Assembly (NCBI GenBank): GCA_013416795.1
Contig: RQSC01001371.1
Location: forward strand, 69,951-82,752
Direction of reading: 5' to 3'
Origin: Prasinococcaceae sp. CCMP 1430
Lineage: Eukaryota > Plantae > Prasinodermophyta
DNA: 12,802 nucleotides
How positions within the stretch are numbered: the first letter of the stretch is position 1; each line of letters starts with the position of its first letter. Positions 2,208 through 12,552 of the stretch are shown here, piece after piece. The position numbers were made by a program, and so were the translations under genes. The notes beneath the pieces were generated by a model. The model was not told the DNA's origin, searched no databases, and worked only from the letters and a program-made list of their open reading frames with translations.

Positions 2208-3799
2208 TCACTCGCTGGCCCGCGTGGCTGCGAGCGCCGCGAGAGCCCCCTTGGGGATCGCCTGCGTGACGCCGTCGACGTCCTCGTCGATGGCGGCAGC
2301 GGTCTTGCCCAACAGCCGCCGCCTGCTCCTGCGCCTGCCCTGCTGGCCGTCGTCCTTGCCCGGTGCCACGTTCTCCTCCTCCGCGGCGGCCTCCGGCTCA
2401 GCGCGCTCGTCCTCGGCGGCATCAATCGCGGCAGCCGGGGCGCCTTCGACGCCAGCGGGCAAATGCGTGGCCAGGTTGCGCAGGGGCGACGTCTGCTCGT
2501 CGGACTCCTCCTGTTTGCGGCCGCGGCCGCGGCTGCGGCTGCGGCTGCGCGAACGCCGCTCAGATATCCTCCGAGACGACCTCCTCCCGCGCGTCACGAC
2601 CACGACGTCCTCCTCCTCCTCCTCCTTCTCGTCCTTCGGGGCAGCTTCCTCGGCATCCGAGTCCGCGACCTCAGACTCGCCCAGCGGAAGGCTGTGCGCC
2701 AGCAGGGACGGCTCGGCCTCCGCGGCGACGTCGTCCGCGGCGGCGTCAGCGCCCTCGCTTGAGACCGCGGGGCACTCCGCCTCGGCCGCATCTGTCTCTC
2801 CCGCCTCGGCCTCCTCATCGTCGCTCGCCGTCGCCGTGACGGGCATCTGCGCAGGCACCTGCGTGTCCATCTCCACCTCGACCTCGTCAGCCTCTCCAGC
2901 GGCGACGGCCACTGCCTCCTCCGCCATCGCAGCTTCGAGCTCCTCGGCAGCCTCGGCCGCCTCGGCCGCATCCGCCGCCTCGGCGTCCCCAACAACCTTG
3001 GCCTCATTTTCGTCCGCATCGTCAGTGGGCTCGTCGGCGGTGGGCGCCGGCTCCTCCTCCACCATCTCGGCATCGACCTTGGGCGTTTCCGCCTCGGTCT
3101 CTTCGGTCGCGGGACCTTCCTCAGGCCGCTCGAGCTCGGCCTCGTCCGCATCCTCCTGCTCGACCTGCTCGTCCGCGGCGTCGGTGGCGGAAGACAGGCG
3201 CAGGTTGAGGGACGCGGGCTCCGATGCGGGGTCGGAGAGGCGCGCGCGCTTGGGCGGTGACTCGTGGTCGGCGTCGGCCTCGGCAGCCTGCTCATCGGAC
3301 GCTGCGCGCGCGAGGGATTGCGGAGGGGGCGCGAGGTGGGGAACAGCGGCGCCCACCCGCGCGCACGCGCGTGCGAGCGCAAAGGGGCGAACATTCGCGA
3401 GAGGACTCGTCAGGTCCTCGCGCGGCGGCGGCACGGCCTCTGACGCGCGACGCGAGGCGCCCCGTGCTGGCGGGCGGCGCACGCGCCGGGCGCGCGGGGC
3501 GCGTACTCACCCTGTTCCCTGTCTTTGCGCACCGCCGCGGCCTTCTTGGCCTCCTCGAGTGCGTCCTTGGGGATCCGTCCAACGCCCATGACGCCCGCGG
3601 CCGCCCTCTCCGCGGCCTTGCTGCCGCCCCATGTCCCGGCGAGCCTCGCGGCCGCGCGCGCAGCCGTGAGCGGCGACGCGGACGTCTTCGCGTCCCCGTT
3701 GAGCTCCGCGCGCGCGGCCGCGCGCAGCAGCGCGCCCACCGCCGGCGCGTGGCCGTTGTACTCCTCGACCGCCGCCGCCTTCTTCTTCGACCCTCCCAT
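2208..3799 (-). CDS. Hypothetical acidic disordered protein with NLS-like and RS-rich segments; probably 2 exons (3799-3511, 3301-2208; ~460 aa)
   Basis: Exon 1 reads MGGSKKKAAAVEEYNG...RKDREQG from ATG 3799 and ends at a phase-1 donor G|GTGAGT (3511/3510). The phase-compatible acceptor cag|CG at 3302/3301 enters the long Glu/Ala-rich frame (SPPKRARL; RSSRRISERRSRSRSRSRGRGRK) ending in TGA at 2208-2210. A second phase-compatible acceptor exists at 3440/3439. Confidence 0.65.
3302..3510 (-). other. Predicted GT-AG spliceosomal intron (alternative shorter version 3440-3510)
   Basis: Minus strand starts GTGAGTACGC and ends CGCGCGCAG; splicing keeps the frame of both flanking ORFs. Confidence 0.55.
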
Positions 3800-3926: not shown

Positions 3927-4683
3927 NNNNNNNNNNNNNNNNNNNNNNNNNNNNNNNNNNNNNNNNNNNNNNNNNNNNNNNNNNNNNNNNNNNNNNNNNN
4001 NNNNNNNNNNNNNNNNNNNNNNNNNNNNNNNNNNNNNNNNNNNNNNNNNNNNNNNNNNNNNNNNNNNNNNNNNNNNNNNNNNNNNNNNNNNNNNNNNNNN
4101 NNNNNNNNNNNNNNNNNNNNNNNNNNNNNNNNNNNNNNNNNNNNNNNNNNNNNNNNNNNNNNNNNNNNNNNNNNNNNNNNNNNNNNNNNNNNNNNNNNNN
4201 NNNNNNNNNNNNNNNNNNNNNNNNNNNNNNNNNNNNNNNNNNNNNNNNNNNNNNNNNNNNNNNNNNNNNNNNNNNNNNNNNNNNNNNNNNNNNNNNNNNN
4301 NNNNNNNNNNNNNNNNNNNNNNNNNNNNNNNNNNNNNNNNNNNNNNNNNNNNNNNNNNNNNNNNNNNNNNNNNNNNNNNNNNNNNNNNNNNNNNNNNNNN
4401 NNNNNNNNNNNNNNNNNNNNNNNNNNNNNNNNNNNNNNNNNNNNNNNNNNNNNNNNNNNNNNNNNNNNNNNNNNNNNNNNNNNNNNNNNNNNNNNNNNNN
4501 NNNNNNNNNNNNNNNNNNNNNNNNNNNNNNNNNNNNNNNNNNNNNNNNNNNNNNNNNNNNNNNNNNNNNNNNNNNNNNNNNNNNNNNNNNNNNNNNNNNN
4601 NNNNNNNNNNNNNNNNNNNNNNNNNNNNNNNNNNNNNNNNNNNNNNNNNNNNNNNNNNNNNNNNNNNNNNNNNNNNNNNNNNN
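3927..4683. other. Assembly gap (757 N)
   Basis: Run of N; ORFs spanning it in the ORF track are not real. Confidence 1.
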
Positions 4684-5742: not shown

Positions 5743-6095
5743 GCGCAGCGGGTCGCCTCGCCGCGCCTGCCCCCGGGGCGCGCCCCGAAGCCCGCGCGCA
5801 CGCGCTCTTTCGAACCGATGGGCAATTCGATCGGCCATCGCACCCATCGTCACCCCCATCGCGCAGCGGCGGCGGGGAAATCGCGCACCTGCGCGCGCGG
5901 GGCGTTCGGCAGGTTTGGGTCTGGGTGGGCAATACTGCACTGTAGGGTTTATATGGGTCCATACCATACAGGGGCAGTCAGGGCGCGTCGTAGAACTCGC
6001 AGAGCATGAACACTTTCTGCTGACAACATGCGCCCGAGCCCGCGATTGAGGGTACTCGAGCGGTGGGAGGTGTGTTGACTCGGGGGGGCAGCGAA
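5743..6095. repeat. Inter-ANK spacer module, copy A (353 bp, identical to 8289-8641)
   Basis: Base-by-base identity at offset 2546; a diverged third copy lies at 10610-10908. Confidence 0.95.
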
Positions 6096-6155
6096 TTGAA
6101 CGCTAATAAGGCGACCGCGGCGACGAGCTGTAGCTCGCTAGGGCCACAGGGGCAG

Positions 6156-8287
6156 TCAGGGGGCGTCGTAGAACTCGCAGAGCATGAACACTTTCTGCTG
6201 CTTCGGGAGACTCTTCTCCTGGCCTCGCATCGCGAGGTCAAGTGCCGTCTTGCCGGCCTTGGTGCGCGCGTGCGTGTCGGCGCCCCGCTCGAGTAGCAGC
6301 CCAAGGACGTCGATGCGGCCGCGCTGAGCGGCACGATGCAGAGGCGTGTAGCCGTTGTTGTCTGCCTTCTCCTTGTCGGCTCCTGCGTCGAGGAGCAGCT
6401 CCACGCACCTCGCTGGCCGACCGTACCAAACGATATCGTTCCTGATCGCATCAGCCGCGAGGTGCAAAGCCGTGCTGCCGGTGCGATCTGCCTTGTCTTT
6501 GTCGGCGCCCGCCTCGAGCAGCAGACCAAGGCATTCGCCAGCCCTCAAAGAAGCTGCGAGGTGGATGGGCGTGCGGCCATCGCAAGCAGCCTTGTCCTTG
6601 TCGACGCCAGCATCGAGCAGCAGCCGCAGGCATTCTACTGCGCGTTCTGCGAATGTACGAATCATCCAGGGATCGGAAAACGCGAGATGCACAGGCGCGT
6701 TGCCTTCGCCATCTGTCTTGTCCTTGTCCGCGCCCACCTCGAGCAGCAGCTGAAGGGAGCTGGGGTTGCAACACCTAGCTGCGAGATGCAGAGGTGTGCT
6801 GCCGTTATCGTCTACCTTATCTTCTTTCGCGCCCGCCTCGAGCAGCAGCTCAAGGCAGCGTTTCTGGTCCCGCTCAGCTGCGACATGCAGAGGCGTTCTG
6901 CCGTTGCCATCTACTCCCTCGATGTTCGCCCCCGCCTCGAGCAGCAGCTGAAGGCAGCGATGTGAGCCTCGCACAGCTGCGAGATGCAGAGGCGTGCAGC
7001 CGTCGCCGTCTACTTCCTCGATGCTCGCCCCCGCCTCGAGGAGCAGCTGAAGGCAGCGTTTATGGCCCAGCTCAGCTGCGAGATGCAGGGGCGTACTGCC
7101 CCACTGATCTGCCTTGTCTATATTGGCGCCTGCCTCGAGCAGTAGCTGAAGGCATCTGTGATTGGCAGAGACACGCTCACCTGTGCGGCCTGCCCGGCCT
7201 GCATCGCCTTCGTGATACATAGGCGCGGCTGCAAGATGCAGAGGCGTGCTGCCGTCGTCGCTTGGCCTGTCCTTGTCTGCGCCTGCCTCGAGGAGCAGCT
7301 GAAGGCAGCTGTCCTCACACCACGAAGCTGCGAAATGCGCAGGCGTGTCGCCCTCGAAGTCTGGCGCGTCCCTGTTGGCGCCCGCCTCGAGCAGCAGCTG
7401 AAGGCAGCTCCGATTGCCATTACTAGCCGCGTAATGCACACTCGTACTCCCGCCGAGATCTCGCTTCTCTGTGTCGGCGCCCGCCTCCAGCAGCAGGCGA
7501 GCGCAGTCGCAGAGGTTGTTTTGAGCTGTGAGATGCAAAGGCGTGAGGCCGTCTTCCTGTGCTGCATCTGTGTTAGCCCCCGCCTCGAGCAGCAGCTTGA
7601 GGCAGTCGTAATTGCCCCTCGAAGCTGCCGCTCGCAAAAGCGTGCATCCGTTGAAGTCTGCCGCGTCCTGGTCAGCGCCCGCCTCGAGCAGCAGGCCGAG
7701 GCAGGCGGCGTGACCTCGGCTGGCCGCGACGTGCGCCGGAGTCAACCCCCCCTCGTTTGCGTGCACATTCGCACCGGACGAGAGCGCACGACGGAGCGCG
7801 CGCCTGCTGCCGCCGAACGCCGCGTGAAACAGCAACTCGTCCTCGTCCATCTCCTCAACGACGAGTCTGTCTATGGTGGCGTCGCACTCCACGCGCGCCG
7901 CGTCGCGCTCCTCGCACAACGTGCGCACAGCGTCCGCGTTGGCGCCCAGCGCCTGCATGGCGAGCAGCAGCGCGTGGCGCTCGCTCGCTGCCGACGCAGC
8001 GCCGGCGTCGAAGTCGGTCACATCCGTCGCGGGTGCACGGACGAGTGCTCTCGTGGCTGCGCCCGGCGGGTCCCACAGGATGTTGGGGTCTTCCAGCCCG
8101 AACCATTCCCAGAAGTTGCCCCAGTCCCAGCAAGGCTGCTGGGCCTGGCGAGAAAGGTCCTCGGCCCGGTCGAACTCCTCCCGCGCCAGTTGGCGCTCCG
8201 CGCGCGCCCGGCGCACGTCGGCCGCGCTCACGCCCAGAGTTTGCGTCGCCAGCAGCAGCGCCTGGCGCGCGCGCTCGGCCGCCGCGC
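6156..8287 (-). CDS. Ankyrin-repeat protein ANK-A (~15 repeats plus N-terminal helical module); its true start lies separately at 10407-10236
   Basis: Tandem 33-aa G-x-TPLHxAA...CLxLLLEAGA-D/N repeats; TGA at 6156-6158. The annotated ORF start at 8678 falls inside a complemented 55-bp block, and the first ~130 aa are translated spacer sequence. Confidence 0.9.
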
Positions 8288-8288
8288 A

Positions 8289-8641
8289 GCGCAGCGGGTC
8301 GCCTCGCCGCGCCTGCCCCCGGGGCGCGCCCCGAAGCCCGCGCGCACGCGCTCTTTCGAACCGATGGGCAATTCGATCGGCCATCGCACCCATCGTCACC
8401 CCCATCGCGCAGCGGCGGCGGGGAAATCGCGCACCTGCGCGCGCGGGGCGTTCGGCAGGTTTGGGTCTGGGTGGGCAATACTGCACTGTAGGGTTTATAT
8501 GGGTCCATACCATACAGGGGCAGTCAGGGCGCGTCGTAGAACTCGCAGAGCATGAACACTTTCTGCTGACAACATGCGCCCGAGCCCGCGATTGAGGGTA
8601 CTCGAGCGGTGGGAGGTGTGTTGACTCGGGGGGGCAGCGAA
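8289..8641. repeat. Inter-ANK spacer module, copy B
   Basis: Identical to 5743-6095. Confidence 0.95.
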
Positions 8642-8696
8642 AACTTGCGATTATTCCGCTGGCGCCGCTGCTCGACATCGAGCGATCCCGGTGTCC
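8642..8696. other. 55-bp block that is the non-reversed complement of 6096-6150 and 10909-10963
   Basis: aacttgcgattattccgctgg...cccggtgtcc versus ttgaacgctaataaggcgacc...gggccacagg: every base is complemented in place. Confidence 0.97.
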
Positions 8697-8701
8697 GGCA
8701 G

Positions 8702-10186
8702 TCAGGGGGCGTCGTAGAACTCGCAGAGCATGAACACTTTCTGCTGCTTCGGGAGACTCTTCTCCTGGCCTCGCATCGCGAGGTCAAGTGCCGTCTTGCC
8801 GGCCTTGGTGCGCGCGTGCGTGTCGGCCCCCCGCTCGAGTAGCAGCCCAAGGACGTCGATGCAGCCGCGCTGAGCGGCACGATGCAGAGGCGTGTAGCCG
8901 TTGTTGTCTGCCTTCTCCTTGTCGGCTCCCGCGTCGAGGAGCAACTCCATGCACCTCACTGGCCGACCGGGCCAATGGGTATCGTTGCTGCTCGCATCAG
9001 CGCGCTCCACGTTTCGGCACGACGGCCACGCTAGACGGAACAGAAACAGCCGCGGGAACTCGAGCAGCAGCCTGACACAGTCGTCGTTGCCATGCCGAGC
9101 TGCGACCTGCAATGGCGTGCGACCGTCACCGCCTGCTTTGTCTTTGTGGTCGCCCGCCTCGAGCAGCAACCGCACACAATCAGCGCCCCCATAGCGTCGC
9201 CGAGCTGCGGCGTGCAAAGGCGCGTTGCCATCGGGATCTGTCTTGTCTTTGTCAGCGCCCGCCTCGAGCAGCAACCGCAAGGAGTCGGTAGAATCGTGAG
9301 AAGCTGCCAAATGCATTGGCGTTTTGCCCCTGGGGTCTGCCGCGTCCTTGTGAGCGCCCGCCTTGAGCAGCAGATCGAGGCAACCTGCTCTGTTGTGGAG
9401 AGCTGCGCAGTGCACAGGCGCGTAGCCTTCCCGATCGGTCTTGTGCATGTCAGCGCCCGCCTCGAGCAGCAGCCGCAGGCAGGTGACCTCGTCGTGCCCG
9501 CGTGCAGTAACCGCGTGATGCACAGGCGTTTCGCCATGCCTATCGGACTTGTCCATGTCAGCGCCCGCCTCGAGCAGCAGACTGAGGCAGCCGGGTTGGC
9601 CCTTTGCTGCGAGATGCAGCGGACCCCGGCCGTCGGTCTCGTACGCGTGCGTAGGATAAGCGAGGTTGACTTCAGTGCCCGTGTTGGCGCCGCGCGCGAG
9701 GGCGTAGCGGAGCGCGTGTTCCTTCCCGTGAGACGCCGCATTCACCAGCAACTGGTCCGCCCCAATCTCCTGGACGAGCTCGTCCAGGGCCGCGTCTCCC
9801 GCCTCGCGCGTCGCGTCGAGCTCCTCGCGCAACGCGCGCACGGCGCGCGCGTTGGTTGTCAGCGCCCGCGTGGCGAGCAGCACCGCATGGCGCACGCTCG
9901 CCGCCGACGCGGCGCTTGCGTCGCAGTGGGCCGTCTCGGACTGCTCCCTAGACGCCCAGGCGTATTCTCCATAAGCTGCATTTCGTCGCGCCCTCCACGG
10001 ATAGGTTCTGTAGAGACGAGTCAGGCTCATGGCCCAGGTCCTGTCCCCCCGCGCCAGGCGGCCCTCCGCGCGCGCCCGGCGGACCTCCGCCGCGGTCACG
10101 CCCAGCGCCCGCGTCGTTAGCAGCAGCGCCTGGCGCGCGCGCTCGGCCGCCGCGGCGTCATCGCCACCGCCGCCGCCGCCAAACAT
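8702..10186 (-). CDS. Ankyrin-repeat protein ANK-B1 (~9 repeats, ~494 aa); one repeat corrupted by a complemented block
   Basis: ATG at 10186 (MFGGGGGGDDAAAAERARQALLL...), in frame with the ankyrin repeats; TGA at 8702-8704. The off-consensus peptide FPRLFLFRLAWPSCRNVER replaces LGADKDKADRTGSTALHLA of the sister copy. Confidence 0.75.
   Translation of the reverse strand: MFGGGGGGDDAAAAERARQALLLTTRALGVTAAEVRRARAEGRLARGDRTWAMSLTRLYRTYPWRARRNAAYGEYAWASREQSETAHCDASAASAASVRHAVLLATRALTTNARAVRALREELDATREAGDAALDELVQEIGADQLLVNAASHGKEHALRYALARGANTGTEVNLAYPTHAYETDGRGPLHLAAKGQPGCLSLLLEAGADMDKSDRHGETPVHHAVTARGHDEVTCLRLLLEAGADMHKTDREGYAPVHCAALHNRAGCLDLLLKAGAHKDAADPRGKTPMHLAASHDSTDSLRLLLEAGADKDKTDPDGNAPLHAAARRRYGGADCVRLLLEAGDHKDKAGGDGRTPLQVAARHGNDDCVRLLLEFPRLFLFRLAWPSCRNVERADASSNDTHWPGRPVRCMELLLDAGADKEKADNNGYTPLHRAAQRGCIDVLGLLLERGADTHARTKAGKTALDLAMRGQEKSLPKQQKVFMLCEFYDAP
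8828..10089. repeat. ~1.26-kb segmental duplication, matching 11095-12356 apart from the complemented block
   Basis: Offset 2267; identical translations in the supplied frames outside 9002-9056. Confidence 0.92.
9002..9056. other. 55-bp block that is the non-reversed complement of 11269-11323 and 6456-6510
   Basis: gcgctccacgtttcggcacg...cagccgcggg versus cgcgaggtgcaaagccgtgc...gtcggcgccc: every base is complemented in place. Confidence 0.97.
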
Positions 10187-10235
10187 CTCTCTCTCTCTGG
10201 TTGCGCACAAGCCCGCGCGCGCTCGTGCGCGCACN

Positions 10236-10407
10236 GGCGAGAAAGGTCCTCGGCCCGGTCGAACTCCTCCCGCGCCAGTTGGCGCTCCGCGCGCGCCCGG
10301 CGCACGTCGGCCGCGCTCACGCCCAGAGTTTGCGTCGCCAGCAGCAGCGCCTGGCGCGCGCGCTCGGCCGCCGCGCGCGCGGCGCCGCTGCCGCCGCCGG
10401 CGTCCAT
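10236..10407 (-). pseudogene. Detached 5' fragment of ANK-A (MDAGGGSGAARAAAERARQALLLATQTLG...), cut at a single-N join
   Basis: 10236-10376 is identical to 8147-8287 (141 bp); ATG at 10407. Joining 10407-10236 to 8146-6156 gives an intact 720-aa ORF, so this may be an assembly fragment rather than a true pseudogene. Confidence 0.7.
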
Positions 10408-10565
10408 CCCCGCTGGCACAGGCGCAGCGCACACAGCACGTTGTTCTGCCGCGCCCACTGTACCGCACGCTGCGCACACCGCTGTCGCCGTCGCCGTCGC
10501 GCGCGCGCCAACAGCACAAAGCGCTGCGCTGTCACATCACGCGAACGAACCATAGCGACTGAGTG
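10408..10565 (-). promoter_or_regulatory. Putative 5' leader/promoter of ANK-A, paralogous to 12399-12552
   Basis: Directly upstream of the ATG; clearly homologous to the region upstream of ANK-B2, including a 34-bp identical block (10518-10551 = 12507-12540). Confidence 0.5.
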
Positions 10566-10611: not shown

Positions 10612-10968
10612 TCTTTCGAACCGATGGTCAATTCGATCGGCCATCGCACCCATCGTCACCCCCATCGCGCAGTGGCGGCGGGGAAATCGCGCGCCTGCGC
10701 GCGCGGGGCGTTCGGCAGGTTTGGGTCTGGATGGGCAATACTGCACTGTAGGGTTTATAAGGGTACCATCATATCATACTGACCCCGCCCGCGGGCGTGG
10801 GCGCCGGCCGGCCACTGACTGAACGCAGCCACCTGACAACATGTGCTCGAGCCCGCGATTGAGGGTACTCGAGCGGTGGGAGGTGTGTTGGCTCGGGGCG
10901 GCAGCAACTTGAACGCTAATAAGGCGACCGCGGCGACGAGCTGTAGCTCGCTAGGGCCACAGGGGCAG
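10610..10968. repeat. Inter-ANK spacer module, diverged copy C
   Basis: Aligns to 5804-6155 with scattered substitutions and a different central ~58-bp segment. Confidence 0.9.
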
Positions 10969-12398
10969 TCAGGGGGCGTCGTAGAACTCGCGGAGCATGA
11001 ACACTTTCTGCTGCTTCGGGAGGCTCTTCTCCTGGCCTCGCATCGCGAGGTCAAGTGCCGTCTTGCCGGCCTTGGTGCGCGCGTGCGTGTCGGCCCCCCG
11101 CTCGAGTAGCAGCCCAAGGACGTCGATGCAGCCGCGCTGAGCGGCACGATGCAGAGGCGTGTAGCCGTTGTTGTCTGCCTTCTCCTTGTCGGCTCCCGCG
11201 TCGAGGAGCAACTCCATGCACCTCACTGGCCGACCGGGCCAATGGGTATCGTTGCTGCTCGCATCAGCCGCGAGGTGCAAAGCCGTGCTGCCGGTGCGAT
11301 CTGCCTTGTCTTTGTCGGCGCCCAACTCGAGCAGCAGCCTGACACAGTCGTCGTTGCCATGCCGAGCTGCGACCTGCAATGGCGTGCGACCGTCACCGCC
11401 TGCTTTGTCTTTGTGGTCGCCCGCCTCGAGCAGCAACCGCACACAATCAGCGCCCCCATAGCGTCGCCGAGCTGCGGCGTGCAAAGGCGCGTTGCCATCG
11501 GGATCTGTCTTGTCTTTGTCAGCGCCCGCCTCGAGCAGCAACCGCAAGGAGTCGGTAGAATCGTGAGAAGCTGCCAAATGCATTGGCGTTTTGCCCCTGG
11601 GGTCTGCCGCGTCCTTGTGAGCGCCCGCCTTGAGCAGCAGATCGAGGCAACCTGCTCTGTTGTGGAGAGCTGCGCAGTGCACAGGCGCGTAGCCTTCCCG
11701 ATCGGTCTTGTGCATGTCAGCGCCCGCCTCGAGCAGCAGCCGCAGGCAGGTGACCTCGTCGTGCCCGCGTGCAGTAACCGCGTGATGCACAGGCGTTTCG
11801 CCATGCCTATCGGACTTGTCCATGTCAGCGCCCGCCTCGAGCAGCAGACTGAGGCAGCCGGGTTGGCCCTTTGCTGCGAGATGCAGCGGACCCCGGCCGT
11901 CGGTCTCGTACGCGTGCGTAGGATAAGCGAGGTTGACTTCAGTGCCCGTGTTGGCGCCGCGCGCGAGGGCGTAGCGGAGCGCGTGTTCCTTCCCGTGAGA
12001 CGCCGCATTCACCAGCAACTGGTCCGCCCCAATCTCCTGGACGAGCTCGTCCAGGGCCGCGTCTCCCGCCTCGCGCGTCGCGTCGAGCTCCTCGCGCAAC
12101 GCGCGCACGGCGCGCGCGTTGGTTGTCAGCGCCCGCGTGGCGAGCAGCACCGCATGGCGCACGCTCGCCGCCGACGCGGCGCTTGCGTCGCAGTGGGCCG
12201 TCTCGGACTGCTCCCTAGACGCCCAGGCGTATTCTCCATAAGCTGCATTTCGTCGCGCCCTCCACGGATAGGTTCTGTAGAGACGAGTCAGGCTCATGGC
12301 CCAGGTCCTGTCCCCCCGCGCCAGGCGGCCCTCCGCGCGCGCCCGGCGGACCTCCGNGCGCGCGCGGCGCCGCTGCCGCCGCCGGCGTCCACGTCCAT
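10969..12398 (-). CDS. Ankyrin-repeat protein ANK-B2 (~9 repeats); 5' end broken at single-N join 12357
   Basis: Ankyrin repeats to TGA at 10969-10971. The putative start MDVDAGGGSGAAR (ATG 12398) is out of frame across the N, and the AAERARQALLL...GVTAA segment present in ANK-B1 is missing. Confidence 0.8.
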
Positions 12399-12552
12399 CC
12401 CCGCTGGCACGGGCGCAGCGCACACCGCACGGCGTTCTGCCGCGCCCACTGTGCCGCACGCTGCGCACCCCGCCGTCGCCGTCGCCATCGCGCGCGCAAC
12501 CACAAAAAAGCGCTGCGCTGTCACATCACGCGAACGAACCCGAGCGACTGAG
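12399..12552 (-). promoter_or_regulatory. Putative 5' leader/promoter of ANK-B2
   Basis: Paralog of 10408-10565, directly upstream of ATG 12398. Confidence 0.5.

Follow-up and report, generated by a model that had tools for sequence, protein, structure and literature searches.

An ankyrin-repeat gene array on a draft scaffold

The window analyzed here is the whole 12,802-nucleotide stretch of Prasinococcaceae sp. CCMP 1430 DNA running from position 69,951 to 82,752 of contig RQSC01001371.1 (assembly GCA_013416795.1, forward strand), and all coordinates given below are positions within this window. Its base composition is GC-rich. Open reading frames combined with Pfam searches of the window reveal three ankyrin-repeat genes in tandem, all on the minus strand, which are called copies A, B, and C. 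Each of the three encoded proteins scores far over the Pfam gathering score for Ank and Ank_2 and carries multiple ankyrin repeats. Pfam assigns five Ank_2 stretches to copy B compared to eight in copy C. The genes and the assembly gaps around them are as follows.

3927–4683, no strand: 757-N gap of estimated size, marking a scaffolded draft
6156–8678, minus strand: copy A open reading frame, ankyrin-repeat gene
8702–10519, minus strand: copy B open reading frame, ankyrin-repeat gene
10969–12468, minus strand: copy C open reading frame, ankyrin-repeat gene
10235, no strand: single-N scaffold join; by exact match, the next 141 nt (10236–10376) duplicate 8147–8287
12357, no strand: single-N scaffold join that replaces about 85 nt of the copy C N-terminal coding region, as judged against copy B 10090–10174

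Single Ns are found at three positions in the window (5551, 10235, and 12357). The 141 nt duplicated after the N at 10235 correspond to coding sequence for the copy A N-terminus. This join suggests that a contig was broken at a repeat boundary and was then set beside copy B by scaffolding. The approximately 85 nt missing from copy C at 12357 are present both in copy B and in environmental relatives of these proteins. Their replacement by a single N therefore extends the copy C open reading frame falsely into unrelated upstream sequence. The 757-N gap and the single-N joins, one followed by a duplicate and one occupying the place of missing sequence, mark the region as part of a scaffolded short-read draft. 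The published genome of Prasinoderma coloniale was assembled from PacBio reads with NextDenovo into 22 chromosomes without a scaffolding or gap-filling step (PMC7455551), and that assembly does not account for the N-containing scaffold examined here.

Several other features of the window were recorded. A 38-nt exact repeat occurs at 5985–6022, 6163–6200, 8531–8568, and 8709–8746. The 3′ flank common to copies A and B holds a relic of the last ankyrin codons (ending ...KVFMLCEFYD...) about 180 nt past the real stop, and the 38-nt relic in this flank is probably the remnant of an older tandem duplication. Outside the ankyrin array, two long open reading frames, 9–2036 on the plus strand and 2208–3482 on the minus strand, have a GC content that varies over the codon positions as in coding sequence. 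Pfam gave no match for either, the protein word search returned no match for 2208–3482, and the protein atlas gave no usable match for 9–2036. The two frames may be lineage-specific genes or high-GC by-products. Between them lies a low-complexity spot (2091–2146) consisting of a 26-nt poly-C run followed by (CA)n and (CG)n tracts. A tRNA scan and an Rfam scan of the window returned no matches.

Two blocks of copy B complemented in place

The initial annotation of this DNA had claimed that two 55-bp blocks in and beside copy B are complemented base for base, with their left-to-right order unchanged, relative to the sister copies. Exact-match and allele comparisons divide copy B into the following parts.

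8289–8641, no strand: left flank of copy B, a 353-nt exact direct match to the 3′ flank of copy A (5743–6095)
8642–8696, no strand: block 1, plain complement, 55/55 to 6096–6150 and to 10909–10963
8697–9001, minus strand: 305-nt interior between the blocks, in normal orientation, a mosaic of A and C alleles
9002–9056, no strand: block 2, plain complement, inside the copy B coding sequence, 55/55 to 6456–6510 and to 11269–11323
9057–10089, minus strand: right part of copy B, a 1,033-nt exact direct match to copy C (11324–12356)

A scripted coordinate comparison confirmed the claim exactly. Aligned in register, both blocks are the non-reversed complement of each of their two sister segments at every one of the 55 positions, and direct identity is 0/55 in all four comparisons. 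The blocks share one fixed length, exactly 55 nt. Block 1 is non-coding; copy B lies on the minus strand, and the block lies 5 nt downstream of its stop codon. The sequences around the blocks were said to be in normal orientation, and an exhaustive exact-match search of the window bears this out: every edge of both blocks adjoins an exact direct match. In addition to the left flank and the right part listed above, these are a 131-nt match to the right of block 1 (6151–6281 = 8697–8827) and a 245-nt match to the left of block 2 (8757–9001 = 11024–11268).

The background against which the blocks must be read is low. With the blocks excepted, complement-only exact matches in the whole window reach at most 17 nt, a length attained in low-complexity sequence. 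Exact reverse-complement matches reach 20 nt at most. Mirror matches reach 26 nt, within the poly-C run, and long ones are confined to the low-complexity spot at 2091–2146. By our own estimate, the chance of a 55/55 in-register match at the base composition of the window is about 0.27^55 per block. Two such complement matches are far beyond chance.

Apart from the blocks, copy B contains little sequence of its own. Nearly all stretches of copy B overall (8147–10234) are identical to copy A or to copy C. Within the 305-nt interior, copy B has the A allele at two sites (8725 and 8756) and the C allele at 13 others, which span 8828–8991; none of its bases there is private. The switch from A to C alleles falls within a 71-nt run that is common to all three copies and is longer than k, the 55-nt word length considered below. 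This run is where a walk through an assembly graph loses phase. The N-terminal end of copy B with its upstream region (10090–10234) is the only part without an exact twin in the window, and the N-terminus that it encodes matches environmental proteins. Rather than being a third gene, copy B may represent a chimeric path or redundant content of the scaffold.

Block 2 changes the encoded protein in copy B from LGADKDKADRTGSTALHLA to FPRLFLFRLAWPSCRNVER without creating a stop codon. The altered segment FPRLFLFRLAWPSCRNVER aligns to LGADKDKAD(R/H)TGSTALHLA in copies A and C and in the environmental proteins P0001, P0121, and P0122. In P0002, the fifth residue of this segment is H and the form is otherwise normal. 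These four proteins were located by a word search and a cluster look-up, and all come from independent environmental assemblies. Identity to copy C is 92% for P0001 and 90% for P0002, and P0121 and P0122 are members of the 90% cluster of P0001. When the last 310 residues of copy C were used to search JGI metagenomes, only distant ankyrin proteins were returned, with at most 46% identity. The normal form of the segment is thus encoded in four independent environmental proteins, and the 19 conserved ankyrin residues are made nonsense by block 2 in copy B only. Pfam and the protein comparison bear out the earlier statement that the uncomplemented version of block 2 encodes consensus ankyrin. The complemented version in copy B is derived, as had also been proposed, because copies A and C and the four environmental proteins encode the uncomplemented form. 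For block 1, which is non-coding, the comparison consists of the agreement between copies A and C.

Block positions and the repeat formed by copies A and C

We compared where the blocks lie in copy B with the pattern of identity between the other two copies. The segments of copies A and C that correspond to the blocks and the interior are listed here.

6096–6510, minus strand: sister segment of copy A; by exact-match comparison, the 55-mers at its two ends are the blocks in their original, uncomplemented form
10909–11323, minus strand: sister segment of copy C; by exact-match comparison, the 55-mers at its two ends are the blocks in their original, uncomplemented form

Exact runs of at least 55 nt are common to copies A and C at four places only: 6096–6178 (83 nt), 6211–6281 (71 nt), 6318–6383 (66 nt), and 6446–6510 (65 nt). 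Outside 6096–6510, the longest run common to the two copies is 44 nt. The initial annotation had placed the start of block 1 exactly where A and C become identical and the end of block 2 exactly where identity between sister copies stops, and both placements hold for the comparison of A with C. A mismatch at 6095/10908 is followed by 83 nt of identity beginning at 6096; at the other end, 6446–6510 equals 11259–11323, and the next position (6511/11324) is a mismatch. Mismatches therefore immediately flank a 415-nt span, whose limits are exactly those of the 55-mers common to A and C. The first 55-mer common to A and C is 6096–6150 and the last is 6456–6510, and these are the originals of block 1 and block 2.

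Since these are the first and last common 55-mers, sequences of the A and C types merge at the vertex 6096–6150 and part at the vertex 6456–6510 when k is 55. The blocks thus coincide with the branch vertices, entry and exit, of the k = 55 de Bruijn graph that A and C define. Their positions in copy B are fixed by a comparison of A with C at one word length, which is meaningful to graph-based software and not to a cell. No process acting on copy B alone could "know" the boundaries between A and C that set these positions.

Origin of the complemented blocks

Templated nucleic-acid synthesis is antiparallel and gives rise to reverse complements, never to plain complements, and the same is true of the products of inversion, fold-back, and template switching. 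The blocks resemble the products of FoSTeS/MMBIR-type inversion, fold-back, or template-switch events in that a short tract has changed its strand sense while the flanks remain collinear. Unlike the reverse complements left by such events, they are complemented in place with their order unchanged. Inversion, fold-back, and template switching do not fit because the blocks are plain complements, and inversion and fold-back were rejected on this ground together with the 20-nt ceiling on reverse-complement matches in the window. Chance resemblance or a low-complexity effect was also rejected. The blocks are far too long for it: they are two 55/55 in-register matches in complex sequence, compared to a background maximum of 17 nt.

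A biological reading would make copy B a true recombinant paralogue, arising when A-type and C-type genes underwent gene conversion or unequal crossing-over, and would require the blocks to be real products of a copying process that is not known. Tandem ankyrin arrays do undergo recombination, and the clean A/C mosaic of copy B is what a recombinant would be expected to look like. Real blocks are another matter. We know of no polymerase, repair, or recombination pathway that yields a non-reversed complement, two events of equal length (55 nt) that both sit at A/C identity boundaries are not expected biologically, and block 2 destroys a conserved ankyrin repeat. We regard the combination of a true recombinant with real blocks as extremely improbable, and the proposition that the complemented 55-mers are truly in the DNA of the organism as next to inconceivable. 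If they were, there would have to be a copying or repair process that, at the margins of conversion tracts, renders a paralogous template as its non-reversed (parallel) complement. The blocks could also have been added after assembly by some other treatment of the data (for example, conversion between formats, a script for merging or polishing, or deliberate alteration of the record), in which case they would still be artefacts. Such an origin is compatible with the fact that nothing in the window identifies a program, and with the long-read assembly of the P. coloniale genome, which involved no k = 55 step. It is nevertheless quite unlikely, since the blocks lie exactly on k = 55 vertices defined by the paralogues, which points to a graph-aware step and not to a generic text operation.

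The two complemented 55-mers are almost certainly not a biological feature. Both blocks very probably arose when software for assembly, repeat resolution, or gap filling, operating on a de Bruijn graph with a k (or overlap) of 55, wrote the sequence incorrectly. The 415-nt span (6096–6510) would have been a repeat in this graph, with 6096–6150 as its entry junction 55-mer and 6456–6510 as its exit. Copy B would have been written as a path that came in on the A-type flank, crossed the repeat, and went out on the C-type flank. The interior would have been emitted correctly, and the two junction 55-mers, which are common to neighboring pieces, would have been emitted complemented without reversal. 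One possible slip is that a piece in minus orientation was reversed as a whole and only its non-overlapping interior was complemented. The initial annotation had arrived at a similar software artefact, in which the terminal k-mers (k about 55) of a putative gap-fill would have been written with complement() where reverse-complement() was needed. A software artefact tied to this k is supported by the coincidence of the blocks with graph vertices, the 415-nt span, the lack of private bases in the copy B interior, the scaffold scars, and the form of block 2 in the relatives, and a repeat-resolving graph path fits the 415-nt segment as well as a gap-fill does. Within the repeat, each of copies A and C retains alleles that are its own. 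A simple collapsed-repeat edge is therefore not enough to account for the entire locus, and the explanation has to assume at least two stages of assembly. The program responsible and the exact coding slip are the parts of the explanation that we infer, and the same applies to whether the cell has a copy B at all.

The locus shares several properties with the mis-resolved repeat paths generated by de Bruijn assemblers of short reads in combination with a scaffolder or gap-closer. The breakpoints are at repeat boundaries defined by k-mers, copy B is a mosaic of its paralogues without private bases between the blocks, and a sized N gap and single-N joins with duplicated flanks are nearby. It differs from ordinary misjoins, in which the bases stay correct, in that the junction k-mers are plain complements and an additional orientation bug is needed. 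The blocks also resemble strand-handling slips in software, being exactly the product of complementing a string without reversing it; seen against an inverted paralogue, a slip of this kind would appear as a mirror image. We are aware of no assembler bug of the complement-without-reversal form, and a literature search for a published bug of this form, or for a case tied to a named assembler, returned none. The two complemented 55-mers were checked by hand and have no common lexicographic canonical orientation on the plus strand, and they therefore give no clue to the program.

These data bear on how the assembly should be used. The error corrupts coding sequence silently, in that 19 ankyrin residues become nonsense with no stop codon to betray it. 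Users who build gene models, compare paralogues, or analyze repeats should screen the assembly for matches of about 55 nt that are either mirrored or complemented without reversal, and should mask any that they find. The status of copy B, and with it the number of genes in the ankyrin array, should not be taken as settled. The blocks themselves are almost surely without biological significance, and all they offer is a warning about the quality of this assembly.
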